Shown in pieces: positions 11,124-38,795 of a stretch of 64,000 bases of DNA; positions within the stretch are counted from its first letter, which is position 1; the number at the start of each line of letters is the position of its first letter. The notes under the pieces were generated by a model. It was not told the DNA's origin, made no database searches, and was given only the letters and a program-made list of their open reading frames with translations. This stretch comes from Octopus sinensis. Its lineage: Eukaryota. Position numbers and translations under genes: made by a program. The stretch lies in contig NC_043013.1 of assembly GCF_006345805.1 (NCBI RefSeq), positions 45,756,001 through 45,820,000 on the forward strand, given 5' to 3'.

Positions 11124-11308
11124 TTAGCATTTAAGTGAATTGATCTTTGCCTTAGGCACTGTACCTGACACCTGAACTCCCAATTTATTTACGCAATAAC
11201 ATTTGTATTTACGACATTGAATTTTCTTATAATTGCCGTTTTTTTCACACCGAAATCTCTTTGAAAAATCTCCTCTTTTTTTTGTTTCTTTTTTGTCAAC
11301 AGCACAGT
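11124..11308 (-). CDS. Exon B4: TY domain [60 protein letters not shown]
   Basis: Acceptor tttcaag; open frame with 6 Cys, NGNY..IQC and CYCV motifs; TAA then G|gtaagt. Not in the ORF track. Confidence 0.9.
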
Positions 11309-14300
11309 CTTGAAAATAAATAAATAAATAAATAAATATTAGTTATTAGCAACGGAAGCAGTATTAATTCAAAATAACAATCTGTATTCCTTACTTAACG
11401 TGTGTAAACTGTAGAAAGCCATATAACTGAAGTATTCATCTCGAGACAGTATCACGTATAGGCATACAGTTCTAAAAAGCATAGTAGCGGAGGAAAAGTG
11501 CTTAGCAGTGCCAGTTTTTCACATAATTTCTAGGTAACTAAAAAAATTTAAACTACTGGTAGAATGTGTTTATAAAACATCCTTTTCTCTTGGCTTTATT
11601 GAGAAAATTCTATAGTTTGTAAGATATTTGTTGTCTTTTTTCTTCAATTTCTGCAATTTCAACCAATCACTGACGTCCATTGCGGTAAAAAGCATTCTGT
11701 GCCGTATGAATATGTCCCTCATTTAAGAAACAGATTGGGTTTATTTACATTTGTGAAGAAAAAAAAAGATACCCTTCCCCACCCCTAACCCTAACCCTAA
11801 AACAGATTGAAATGCAATAGATCGATACTAGGGTCATAATTATGGGTGACAATTTCATATGACACCGCTAGCAAAAACTGCCGGTCAAACCGAAAAGACC
11901 CTCGCTTAATCTAGATTTCTGTTTCTTTGAGCGTCTTCAGTAGAAAGTATAATTTTTTCCCAATAGAAACAATGATTGATACATTAACAAACATAATTGA
12001 GGCAGATATTTACTTAGCATGGATAAGCTGTTGAACGTGGATCTAAACAATAAACATACTGCATAGATTTATTGTAAGACTAGCAGCATAGCCCGGCGTT
12101 GCCCGGGTATGTAAGAGCCCCTAGTAGGCAACGACTAATCCCAATCTAGTCCTTTCCCTCTAGGGAACGAAGGCGCATGTGTAGGTTGCAATGTCTTCTC
12201 TTCACTCGAATACTTCTGTGTATACGATGTTCCTAGCTGTCCCTTTGGGCGATAAAATGGTCGAGTTGTGTCCCCTAGACAGAAAATGTGTTGCATATAA
12301 AAAGCTTAGATTCTCGACCCCATGTCGAATTTATCGATTTTTTTCAGAACTGGGGGAACTTTTCAAAATTTTCGCTGCGTTAGTTTTGAATTATGACGTT
12401 GGGCTATGTGTGTGTCAAGTTTCATCATAATCGGTTGAAAGCCGTGGTCAGGGTGAGGGTACAACCTGACAGACACACAGACACACAGACAGATAAACTG
12501 CCGTTTATATAGAGAGATAATAAATAAAAATTGCAGTGCAACTTCGTGATCATGGAATTCCTGTTAACTCGGGTTTTTAACTAAAACTTATTTTTAGCAA
12601 ACTTTTTGGTTGACTCGAGTCTACGACTGAAGACACTTTCCCAAAGTGTCATGCAGTGGAACCAAGGCTTTATAGCGAACTTCTTAACTATATAACCATG
12701 CCTGGTGATTAGTATCAAATAATTATGATTATGGCAAAGAATATACTTTGCCATGGTATATATTTATGATCTCATAAGTCCTCGTGGATCTGCAAAGACG
12801 ATAATCACAGTTTCTTTAACCTGACTAAGCCATATACAAATCACAGCACATCTACTTGGATTTGAATTAATCCTTTAACTATAATATCTGCAGTGATTTA
12901 GTCCAAGTTCAATACTGATGGGACGAATCTTTGTTGAAAAGCATTCCAGCTGTAACCACCCCGTCTTTTTACGGTATGGAAGATTACCAATGTCTCATTT
13001 TTTATTTAAGGCAGTAAGGAATAATTTAAGGGGTATTTGGTTGCTATTTTTAGCAGAGGCTTTCTAGTTAGCTCGGTCTGTGTATACGTGTGTTGTTGCT
13101 TAGCCCCAGGTCAACCCTGCTGGAACCGGCCTGAGATCAAAGGCATTCTAGCGGTAATCGTCTACCCTTTTACGAGTACATCAAGTACAGCATTATCCTA
13201 TGTTTCCTGTTTTTATGTGGTAAGGAGGACAATTTGGCTATTTGCATTTGGTCAAGTAACCAAAAAGAGGCTTCCTAATTTCTTGTATAATCATCATCAT
13301 CATTGTTCGACCGTGTTCGAGACAATGGAATTTACTATATTATGCCAGACTTCACGGTCCATCATAGCATTATGGAGATCCTGTTGCTGGATACCTGTAT
13401 CCCTGGAGATTACATCAGGGTAGGAGAGTGTGCGCCCTCTGGTATCGTGAGCAGATGGCTTCCAGAAGAGAAGAGTAGAAATTACCTCGTTTTCAGCTCT
13501 ACAACAATGTCCTCTCCAGCAAACTGGACTCTTCTACCTTTCACAAGAGATGACACAGTTGGTAGTTTCCCATATATTTGCATTTTGGTTGGATGACGCT
13601 TCCACGAGAGATTTTGAGCTCTCATAAGGAGGCGAGTGTAGGTTCCATCCAACCGCCTCTCAAGCTTCTTTGATAACGTCCAGGTTTTTGAGCCATATAG
13701 TAGAATTGGTTCGATTGTGTATAATGATAAAGTGATGTTCAGTGATTAAATAGACTAGCGTTTCAATATCAGAGAAGACTTCGTATTCAGGACGTAAAAT
13801 ATGAAGCTGGATGTAAATATGAAATTTCATTAAGGAAGGAAACACAGGCCTTTATTTCTATATTTCTTAGATAATTGCCTTAAAATCTACTTACTGCAAT
13901 TCATGCTTTCCACTTGTGTCTTCTTGACATAGATGTTGTAGATCATTTCCCCAGAGGATGTATAACAGAAGCAGCTGGTAGAGAAGGTAAAAATGTTATA
14001 TTACTCACCTCTTAAAATGTGCAAGCAGCTTTAGAACGAGGATATATTAAATGAAGAAAAAAGTTTTCTTTTTTGGATACAAACCTTTCCAAGATGTGAG
14101 TGTTTCATTTATAAATAAGACCTTAATTTCGTGAGTTGACAACATTTATTGAAAAGCGTAAATCGAATTAGTAGTTATTGTTTTGTCCCAGGTCAGCCTT
14201 GATCAGGCAGATCTCTCTGATCCGCCGAGGTCGACTTTGCCTTTCATCCTTTCGGGGTCGATTAAATAAGAACCAGTTAGACGCTGGGGTTGATGTAATC

Positions 14301-38300: not shown

Positions 38301-38795
38301 CCGTGTATATATCACTTGTAATATGATGATATTCCACGACCTTCTCTCTCTTGTGGCAGACAAACGCAAATAGACATCGTACACAGAAAGAAGGAGTTGA
38401 TGTAGTCGTATAACTGCTAGAAATAACAGCCAAGTCTCTCTTTACCTCGTTAAAAAAATATAATGGATAATGTAATACTATACAGACTAGGACGTACAGG
38501 CGTTGGGAAGACCATAGAGCTGTAAAGCCTCCAGTATAATAGCAACAACATACGCTCGACTTCACATAGTGTTGCTTGCCATCATATAAACACCTCTTAG
38601 AGTTGCTATGGTGATGGATGAGAGATTGTCGAAGATGTATCTAACTTGTTATGCAAGCATTGACAGCTACAGACATTAAATGAACTAATGATTAGTAATG
38701 AGGATGTTCAGGTAAATGTTTTCAAAGCAGTACTTACTTGCCTGAGTAGCAACAACAACAGCAACAGACGACATAATTATCAGCAGGAGCTTCAC
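11124..38795 (-). CDS. Gene AB: secreted multi-TY-domain protein (thyropin-like), join(38795-38738,30580-30487,27877-27798,25799-25614,17087-16994,13974-13895,11308-11124), 258 aa if all exons are used
   Basis: All junctions GT-AG with compatible phases (1,2,1,1,2,1). Four six-Cys TY domains with QC / CxC(V) motifs. Start codon is GTG. Exon connectivity is inferred. Confidence 0.7.
11512..11900. mobile_element. Merlin-like MITE, left TIR degenerate
   Basis: Internal sequence nearly identical to 3049-3466; right end CCGGTCAAACCGAAAAGACC. Confidence 0.8.
12080..12517 (-). mobile_element. Non-autonomous Helitron
   Basis: Minus strand reads A|TC...CCCGGGCAACGCCGGG hairpin...CTAG|T: canonical 5' TC, subterminal hairpin, 3' CTAG, inserted between A and T. 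Confidence 0.75.
13290..13700 (-). mobile_element. 5'-truncated RTE-like LINE (3' end, (TGA)n tail)
   Basis: Homologous to 43300-43715 (RRVQFAG...[26 protein letters not shown]). Confidence 0.8.
13895..13974 (-). CDS. Exon B3: [26 protein letters not shown] (second half of a TY domain)
   Basis: 80 bp, acceptor ctctaccag, donor gtaagt, phase 2->1; same size as A3 and C3. Confidence 0.9.
15190..15850 (-). mobile_element. Decayed Ty3/Gypsy gag fragment with zinc knuckle
   Basis: [20 protein letters not shown], then after a frameshift [44 protein letters not shown], then a CxxC/H/C knuckle region ([11 protein letters not shown]...CFECDKIGH). Confidence 0.7.
15872..16093 (-). mobile_element. tRNA-derived SINE family 3 (head GGCGGCGAGCTGGCAGAAACGTTAGC)
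   Basis: About 18-bp TSD CTCACCTGGTTACCATAT. Other copies at about 14222-14370, 18300-18716, 24467-24713, 27270-27420, 28470-28860, 42529-42755, 44961-45190 (17-bp TSD), 54213-54395, plus tandem arrays. Confidence 0.85.
16994..17087 (-). CDS. Exon B2: [30 protein letters not shown] (first half of a TY domain)
   Basis: 94 bp, acceptor gatatttcag, donor gtaagc, phase 1->2; C-x-x-DG-x-Y-x-x-x-QC motif. Confidence 0.9.
19350..20757. repeat. 1.4-kb compound tetranucleotide satellite (CCAG/CCAT/CTAG/CCAA)
   Basis: Direct reading; source of the (WLAG)n ORFs. Confidence 0.95.
23075..23205 (-). mobile_element. LINE apurinic-endonuclease fragment
   Basis: [13 protein letters not shown] resembles the DIxxLxETR motif of RTE/CR1 endonucleases; short. 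Confidence 0.45.
25614..25799 (-). CDS. Exon A4: TY domain [61 protein letters not shown], open phase-1 donor
   Basis: 186 bp, acceptor ttttcaag, donor G|gtaaga; overlaps ORF 25582-25872. Confidence 0.9.
26124..26540. mobile_element. Merlin-like MITE, 8-bp TSD AGGTATCA
   Basis: Complete TIRs and exact TSD. Confidence 0.85.
27798..27877 (-). CDS. Exon A3: [26 protein letters not shown]
   Basis: 80 bp, acceptor taataacag, donor gtaagt, phase 2->1. Confidence 0.9.
28862..29223. mobile_element. Merlin-like MITE truncated at both ends
   Basis: Internal sequence and (TAACCC)n present, TIRs missing. Confidence 0.75.
30487..30580 (-). CDS. Exon A2: [30 protein letters not shown]
   Basis: 94 bp, acceptor aatatttcag, donor gtaagc, phase 1->2. 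Confidence 0.9.
34720..35082. repeat. (TA)n-dominated microsatellite
   Basis: Direct reading. Similar tracts at about 9798-9860, 17590-17680, 29897-30086, 48020-48150. Confidence 0.95.
35100..35141 (-). ncRNA. Variant minimal type I hammerhead-like motif (Penelope type)
   Basis: CAGT-CCGATGTA-GGC gatcag GCC-GAA-ACTTCAAAGT-C-ACTG. Stems I-III and the GUC site are intact; the core deviates from CUGAUGA. Confidence 0.5.
36280..36500. repeat. (TCTA)n microsatellite
   Basis: Direct reading; similar (CTAT/CTGT)n tract at about 59757-60150. Confidence 0.95.
37596..37670 (+). ncRNA. Type I hammerhead ribozyme (Penelope-type, palindromic stem III)
   Basis: CTATG-CTGATGA-t-CTTG[34 nt]CAAG-t-GAA-ACTAATTAGT-A-CATAG. 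All catalytic core nucleotides present, stem I CTATG/CATAG, stem II CTTG/CAAG, predicted cleavage after GTA (37665). Confidence 0.75.
38738..38795 (-). CDS. Signal-peptide exon 1 of gene AB: (V)[21 protein letters not shown] at the start position
   Basis: Paralog of 431-482 and 62742-62793 with donor gtaagt, GTG instead of ATG, a 6-nt insertion, and an internal ATG at 38774-38772. Confidence 0.75.

Follow-up and report, generated by a model that had tools for sequence, protein, structure and literature searches.

The question raised by this locus is what an octopus gene makes when a single promoter and first exon are followed by two complete sets of domain-encoding exons. The stretch of DNA that was analyzed, hereafter the window, comprises 64,000 nt of the Octopus sinensis genome (contig NC_043013.1, positions 45,756,001 to 45,820,000), contains no N, and carries every feature discussed below on its minus strand. 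Within it lies a gene, referred to here as the A/B gene, that has one first exon (exon 1, which would encode the signal peptide), two diverged cassettes (A and B), each of three exons encoding two thyroglobulin type-1 (TY) domains, and one terminal exon. Judging from the sequence, we tentatively favor a single transcription unit encoding a constitutive secreted protein with four TY domains. We regard this reading, including the predicted splicing, secretion and inhibitor function, as plausible if just short of probable. Positions of all features are collected in Table 1.

Self-BLAST, a motif scan and TBLASTN, followed by reading of the nucleotides, formed the basis of the exon map. The motif scan and TBLASTN identified three TY cassettes in the window, namely A, B and that of a complete neighboring gene, gene C. 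Each of them yields two matches to Pfam Thyroglobulin_1 (PF00086), with scores of 48-59 bits against a curated cut-off of 20.6, and the six-cysteine pattern with its QC and C-x-C-[VFYT] motifs is present in every TY domain. Twelve cysteines per cassette are found in A, B and C, as well as in the orthologues of A and C from Octopus bimaculoides. An AG acceptor and a GTAAG donor border the exons throughout, and all splice sites are of the U2-type GT-AG class, with the acceptor of B2 comparable in quality to the A2 and C2 acceptors. Exon 1 ends in phase 1, and exons 2 and 3 together (94 + 80 nt) and exon 4 (186 nt) each make up a 1-1 module. The exons of the two cassettes are matched in phase and measure 94, 80 and 186 nt in A, against 94, 80 and 185 nt in B, where the stop precedes the last base. 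The join from A4 to B2 is in frame and reads LLCSAPCNEY. On nucleotide reading, the exon positions of A and B, the phases and the in-frame status of all junctions listed in a first-pass annotation of this stretch (A4-B2, exon 1-B2, A2-B3 and A3-B4) were matched exactly. Colinear homology between A and B starts about 65-90 bp beyond exon 4 (25549/11057) and ends within intron 1 at 33067/23089, in agreement with the end near 33070/23070 placed there by that annotation. No match to Rfam was detected in the window.

The layout was also examined in O. bimaculoides, where a locus (L001) is colinear with the window and presents, in order, gene C, intergenic DNA, exon 1, A2, A3, A4 and then intron-1-type sequence of the kind found upstream of B. 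This last sequence lies 5.8 kb past A4 (L001 39354-42135, matching window 23228-17970), and the adjacency of A4 and B-upstream sequence in O. bimaculoides indicates that the junction is older than the split from O. sinensis. The exons of A and B share 61% nucleotide and 45% amino-acid identity. An assembly artefact, which the first-pass annotation had named as a possible source of the duplication, is ruled out by this divergence of about 39%, by the absence of N in the window and by the reproduction of the order in the independent O. bimaculoides assembly.

The two cassettes share a single head. A promoter/exon-1 module of 660 bp occurs in only three copies in the 2.72-Gb genome, all of them within the window (38.5-39.2, 62.5-63.2 and 0.2-0.85 kb) and all with an identical TATA element. 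Cassette B had been claimed to lack an exon 1 of its own, and this is borne out: no exon-1 or promoter homologue was detected between 17.1 and 25.6 kb by word-7 BLASTN with both exon-1 regions, by TBLASTN with the signal peptide or by the genome-wide count of the module.

They also share a single tail. Sensitive BLASTN with the terminal-exon region of gene C revealed no copy between A4 and B2, and the only other copy in the window was found at 6177-5708, 3' of B. With terminal-exon copies only at 53.7 and 5.9 kb, cassette A does end, as had been proposed, in an open phase-1 donor without a terminal exon. This donor (CTG/GTAAGA, the slash marking the exon border) is conserved in O. bimaculoides. 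It is a true splice site by homology, because annotated products of gene C end in ...LPCY-ENRS in O. sinensis (-DNRS in O. bimaculoides) and the ENRS ending requires an equivalent donor joined to the exon that starts at 53709 (ttttcag/AG AAC AGA TCA TAG). The terminal exon of the A/B gene itself had been placed at 6.55 kb and had to be moved, since the sequence there matches intron 4 of gene C without an exon-like frame, and the homologue begins at 5945. There the acceptor is shifted by one base (CAAG/, with 5945 as first exon base), the frame encoding ENRS-stop is lost, and an AATAAA is retained about 90 nt into the homologue. The TAA of B4 sits one base ahead of a still-perfect donor. With the stop one base before the last exon junction, the terminal exon would provide only 3' untranslated region and the mRNA would be safe from nonsense-mediated decay.

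Taken as one unit, the A/B gene would span about 33 kb of the minus strand, from the promoter and exon 1 (38.8 kb) through A2-A3-A4, an intron of 8.5 kb and B2-B3-B4 with its stop to the terminal exon (5.9 kb). Given consensus U2 sites and phase-symmetric cassettes, exon-definition splicing should by default join all seven coding exons. The predicted product has four TY domains separated by very short linkers (C-N-C, C-SAP-C and C-N-C) and would be a thyropin-like candidate inhibitor of cysteine proteases. Small multi-TY proteins, four-TY and (TY-TY)x2 arrangements included, were found in other animals in our library searches. The first-pass annotation had envisaged a four-TY product of 258 aa. 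The seven-exon in-frame chain holds, and the intact 258-aa open reading frame (ORF) does not, since the ancestral start at 38795-38793 is a GTG in the A/B gene. No in-frame ATG occurs upstream of this GTG, and the first ATG past the TATA element (38902) is codon 8 of exon 1 and is in frame. Translation would start at this codon, producing a precursor of 251 aa with a leader of 12 residues. The ancestral leader, as seen in gene C and in a third module copy (D), has 17 residues and opens with MKLLL[IV]; exon 1 of the A/B gene carries a 6-nt insertion that lengthens the remaining hydrophobic core.

Several observations weigh against a four-domain product. The ancestral ATG, lost here, is retained by copies C and D as well as by the O. 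bimaculoides orthologue, and the leader left by a start at codon 8 is unusually short. No predicted protein with B or with the A-B junction was retrieved from libraries of 5.8 billion sequences or 1.8 billion representatives, which include the NCBI octopus annotations and Logan contigs, and the closest match to B or A-B in word-based and exhaustive HMMER protein searches was the orthologue of C, at 49%. In O. bimaculoides, L001 ends in Ns about 0.9 kb short of the expected B2, leaving B unread there. The only gene model that touches this locus (LOC128249693 isoform X1, P0006) has an upstream exon spliced straight to the A4 acceptor, and its coding sequence finishes SGK-stop by read-through of the A4 donor. 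Finally, the intactness of B over the post-speciation interval alone has a probability of about 0.2 by chance, and post-fusion constraint is thus not demonstrable.

The O. bimaculoides model deserves a closer description. Its first coding exon is located some 3 kb 5' of exon 1 (window 41816-41091; L001 10001-10243) and contains an ORF of 81 codons without a signal peptide. The O. sinensis counterpart of this ORF is broken by stops, which suggests that an isoform of this type is probably non-productive; the upstream exon is probably a non-coding alternative 5' exon. The way the model ends could also point to two transcription units, with A read through and polyadenylated after A4 and B expressed from an unrecognised, non-homologous promoter and first exon at 17.1-25.6 kb. 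In O. sinensis, read-through of the A4 donor would add a tail of 11 codons and an ATTAAA is found at +547, and alternative first exons are annotated in the family (isoform X3 of the C orthologue). We nevertheless consider such a division improbable, as both species have kept the A4 donor and no canonical AATAAA occurs within 800 nt 3' of A4 in either O. sinensis or O. bimaculoides. The 17.1-25.6 kb interval, besides having no homologue of the exon-1/promoter module, consists of dispersed repeats together with a (CCAG)n array and sequence derived from intron 1.

The lost ATG raises a different possibility, namely that in O. sinensis the locus is decaying, the remnant of a once functional fused gene from which the secreted protein is no longer translated. 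The decayed terminal-exon frame and the absence of an A or B protein model from the O. sinensis and O. vulgaris annotations in the libraries are in line with this explanation. So are the ratios of nonsynonymous to synonymous substitution (omega), with 0.86 in A and about 1 along the branch leading to B. The terminal-exon ORF is, however, irrelevant given the stop in B4, the first AUG of the mRNA is in frame, and the 6-nt insertion in the hydrophobic core looks compensatory. Moreover, the loss of the exon-1 ATG is the sole lesion: no stop, frameshift, lost cysteine or lost splice site was found in the six cassette exons.

Comparison of the A exons of O. sinensis (window 25614-30580) with those of O. 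bimaculoides (L001 28782-33188) also argues against decay. The exons are equal in length, their GT-AG borders are intact and 12 of 12 cysteines are kept. Introns of the A gene differ between the species by 6.9% mismatch and 0.013 gap openings per bp, a rate that predicts 4.7 indels per 360 bp, whereas the A exons have none (P=0.009). Under random substitution at the observed level, the open frame and the 12 cysteines were retained in 0.09% of trials. At the same time, 52 of the 360 A-exon sites (14.4%) have changed, about twice the intron value (binomial P=4e-7). The exons of gene C show the opposite pattern, with 19 differences in 363 sites (5.2%) and an omega of 0.36, which denotes purifying selection. 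Exons that change faster than the neutral introns, on an invariant disulfide scaffold, are beyond what relaxation alone would give and point to diversifying selection (or conversion between paralogues) instead of decay. Cassette B was compared with its paralogues only. On its branch, with about 17% nucleotide change, it has kept 12 cysteines, its frame and all six splice sites, for which the probability by chance is about 0.0005. That B is intact despite this amount of change indicates that it was translated for most of its history, and, being without a first exon of its own, it must have been expressed via a foreign one. Both cassettes thus bear the marks of coding sequence under selection. 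We view the remnant explanation as rather unlikely, and the four-TY unit as the preferred interpretation.

The first-pass annotation had also proposed combinatorial exon switching, in which regulated alternative splicing at the level of cassettes would yield A, B, A+B and hybrids such as A2-B3 or A3-B4 from one promoter, and hence a repertoire of inhibitors. Every such junction is in frame, and about 55% of residues are different between A and B, such that the isoforms would differ functionally. The intron just upstream of A2 and B2 is held 90-97% identical by gene conversion, and the O. bimaculoides model shows that a transcript may leave out exon 1, A2 and A3. On the other hand, joint inclusion is in frame, the intron between the cassettes measures 8.5 kb and all sites are of the U2 GT-AG type, none of which amounts to a known device for exclusive choice. 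A search for docking/selector complementarity between intron 1 and the segments upstream of the cassettes retrieved only dinucleotide repeats and elements resembling short interspersed nuclear elements (SINEs). Also against switching, joining A4 to the terminal exon gives a non-conserved tail (ESDHRICLRGT-stop) with an odd, unpaired thirteenth cysteine, and hybrids of the A2-B3 type would unite, in one disulfide-knotted domain, halves sharing only about 45% identity. The skipping isoform of O. bimaculoides lacks a signal peptide, and its upstream ORF is interrupted in O. sinensis.

Alternative splicing is common among exons duplicated in tandem (PMC9013439), in many cases in a mutually exclusive manner (PMC9013439, PMC6071210). 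The A/B gene resembles the mutually exclusive splicing of the Dscam type in having tandem homologous exons of equal length and phase within one transcription unit. It differs in that the repeated unit is a cassette of three exons whose joint inclusion is in frame, and no docking/selector, steric or splice-site incompatibility was found. With no frame incompatibility, short intron or docking/selector complementarity identified, combinatorial switching is not supported, and we judge it to be quite unlikely. Less probable again is a variant in which A, B and A+B would be used as interchangeable three-exon units, with recurrent intron conversion preserving a shared splicing-control element. If true, such interchange would represent alternative splicing of whole two-domain modules and would provide a small repertoire of fast-evolving inhibitors, in an animal known for heavy diversification at the RNA level.

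The intron between A4 and B2 contains further repeats. At 19346-20757 lies a 1.4-kb (CCAG)n microsatellite with about 353 units, and the corresponding position in O. bimaculoides is without it. A dispersed element of about 400 bp is present twice in the same 8.5-kb intron, at 23868-24278 and 17447-17903, in opposite orientation and with about 90% complementarity. In the pre-mRNA, this inverted pair may fold into a long duplex, which could be a substrate for splicing or RNA editing.

The origin of the two cassettes can be addressed through their divergence. Synonymous divergence (dS) is 0.79 for A-B, 0.79 for A-C and 0.46 for B-C. Between B and C, unique intron blocks flanking exon 2 and within intron 2 share 79-82% identity, as opposed to 69-70% between A and B, and blocks around exons 3 and 4 are 68-73% identical in all pairs. 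The only block that is A/B-like is the intron-1 segment, at 90-97%. Within it, a stretch of 233 bp (17216-17448 versus 30819-31051) is 97% identical in O. sinensis, each copy is about 87% identical to O. bimaculoides, and the adjacent exons are about 30% diverged. The higher identity within the species than between species implies gene conversion after speciation, confined to the intron. A transposable element as the source of the intron-1 homology was ruled out, copies being found only in this cluster.

The internal duplication proposed by the first-pass annotation thus needs to be reconsidered. By dS and by the exon-2 and intron-2 blocks, which place B nearer to C, A and B are the most distant pair and not each other's closest relatives, and a simple internal duplication is not favored. 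The present map could result from an ancient internal duplication with later conversions or, at least as well, from a fusion of two neighboring complete paralogues. Fusion genes form by deletion between adjacent paralogues. Here, the deletion would have run from intron 4 of A to intron 1 of B, removing the terminal exon of A and exon 1 of B. As in known fusions of paralogues, the head of one gene would have been attached to what follows the head in the next, its body and tail, at the cost of one terminal and one first exon. The A/B gene would differ in that the breakpoints are non-homologous (intron 4 to intron 1) and both bodies are kept instead of one hybrid. The divergence pattern, along with the truncated neighbor D, mildly favors the fusion route.

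Two neighbors complete the cluster. The spliced product of gene C equals XP_029646880.1 exactly (O. sinensis, 'U24-ctenitoxin-Pn1a-like', 142 aa) and is 92% identical to the O. bimaculoides 'thyroglobulin isoform X1/X2' (orthologue XP_014772368.1, isoform X2). Gene C serves as the reference for the normal structure of the family, with five exons and two TY domains. It resembles the A/B gene in its promoter/exon-1 module (90-92% identical), exon sizes, phases, C-N-C linker and 12-cysteine two-TY cassette. It differs in having one cassette, a coding terminal exon (ENRS-stop) and an omega of 0.36, whereas the A/B gene has two cassettes, a stop in B4, a GTG and much faster exons. The other neighbor, D, is an orphan promoter and exon 1. 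Its intron contains a third, truncated copy (91-95% identical) of the A/B intron-1 segment, 11-17 kb downstream (C17:45739300-45745000), and no TY exon or terminal exon was found within 30 kb downstream of D. The cluster therefore has a 'headless body' (B) beside a 'bodiless head' (D).

Table 1. Features of the A/B gene and its neighbors, in window coordinates and listed in the direction of the minus strand; a slash marks the exon border at splice sites.
Feature	Positions	Strand	Description
Gene C (complete)	53500-62793	-	E1 62793-62742, C2 60307-60211, C3 56370-56291, C4 55624-55439, terminal exon from 53709
Promoter region of the A/B gene	38796-39201	-	TATAAA starting at 38902; 90-92% identical to the other two module copies
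Exon 1 (putative signal-peptide exon)	38795-38738	-	Phase-1 donor A/GTAAGT
A2, first half of TY domain 1, cassette A	30580-30487	-	94 nt, phase 1 to 2
A3, second half of TY domain 1, cassette A	27877-27798	-	80 nt, phase 2 to 1
A4, complete TY domain 2, cassette A	25799-25614	-	186 nt; open phase-1 donor CTG/GTAAGA
Junction region, end of A-type homology to start of B intron-1-type sequence	23090-25548	-	Dispersed repeats
Intron-1-derived sequence upstream of B2	17088-23089	-	90-97% identical to 30752-33067 in intron 1 of A
B2, first half of TY domain 1, cassette B	17087-16994	-	94 nt
B3, second half of TY domain 1, cassette B	13974-13895	-	80 nt
B4, TY domain 2, cassette B	11308-11124	-	185 nt; TAA stop 11126-11124; donor AAG/GTAAGT
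Terminal-exon homologue of the A/B gene	5708-5945	-	71% identity with the gene C terminal exon
Orphan D, promoter + exon 1	193-850 (exon 482-431)	-	98% identical to the gene C counterpart

Elsewhere in the genome, three more exon-4-like TY exons were detected that are 44-51% identical to B4 (C17:46038207-46038389 on the minus strand, C17:46161001-46161183 on the plus strand, and C12245:15438-15578). Two of them are on the same chromosome, 220-340 kb away, and all three are without the promoter/exon-1 module. Two further repeats, abundant and SINE-like in appearance, are scattered over the window. The first is a unit of about 184 bp that is both dispersed and arranged in short tandem arrays (e.g., 58296-59032, 52694-53132, 60706-61073, 15870-16094 and 18300-18667), and the second is a dispersed element of about 420 bp (3049-3466, 11512-11898, 26124-26540, 40242-40665, 45948-46354 and 55741-56152).

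Domain accretion by phase 1-1 exon modules is the classical exon-shuffling route for extracellular proteins. The A/B gene follows it in concatenating symmetric phase-1, disulfide-rich modules, here in the form of a two-domain cassette, and nothing essential differs; the mechanism, duplication or fusion of exons or cassettes with phase 1-1 modules, is already known and textbook. Among characterized proteins, equistatin of Actinia equina is a thyropin with three TY domains that inhibits cysteine proteases and cathepsin D (cited in PMC7693380). The predicted octopus protein would share with it a small secreted form consisting only of tandem six-cysteine TY type-1 domains, and differing targets for the individual domains are plausible. 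The two differ in their low sequence identity and in that a repeated unit of two domains would make up the octopus protein.

A signal-peptide-bearing TY protein was detected in the proteome of the posterior salivary gland of O. vulgaris (PMC7693380). The exon-4 motifs that were looked for are absent from the available part of the supplementary text of that study, and the salivary protein could not be assigned to the A/B locus. If a four-TY mRNA exists, it would represent an unannotated octopus gene, absent from all protein collections searched, and a clean case of a secreted inhibitor that doubled its number of domains by joining phase-symmetric cassettes. Exons that evolve at twice the rate of introns on an invariant cysteine scaffold are typical of venom, immune and other antagonistic proteins, and studies of octopus saliva or mucosal defence could take this small family as a candidate.

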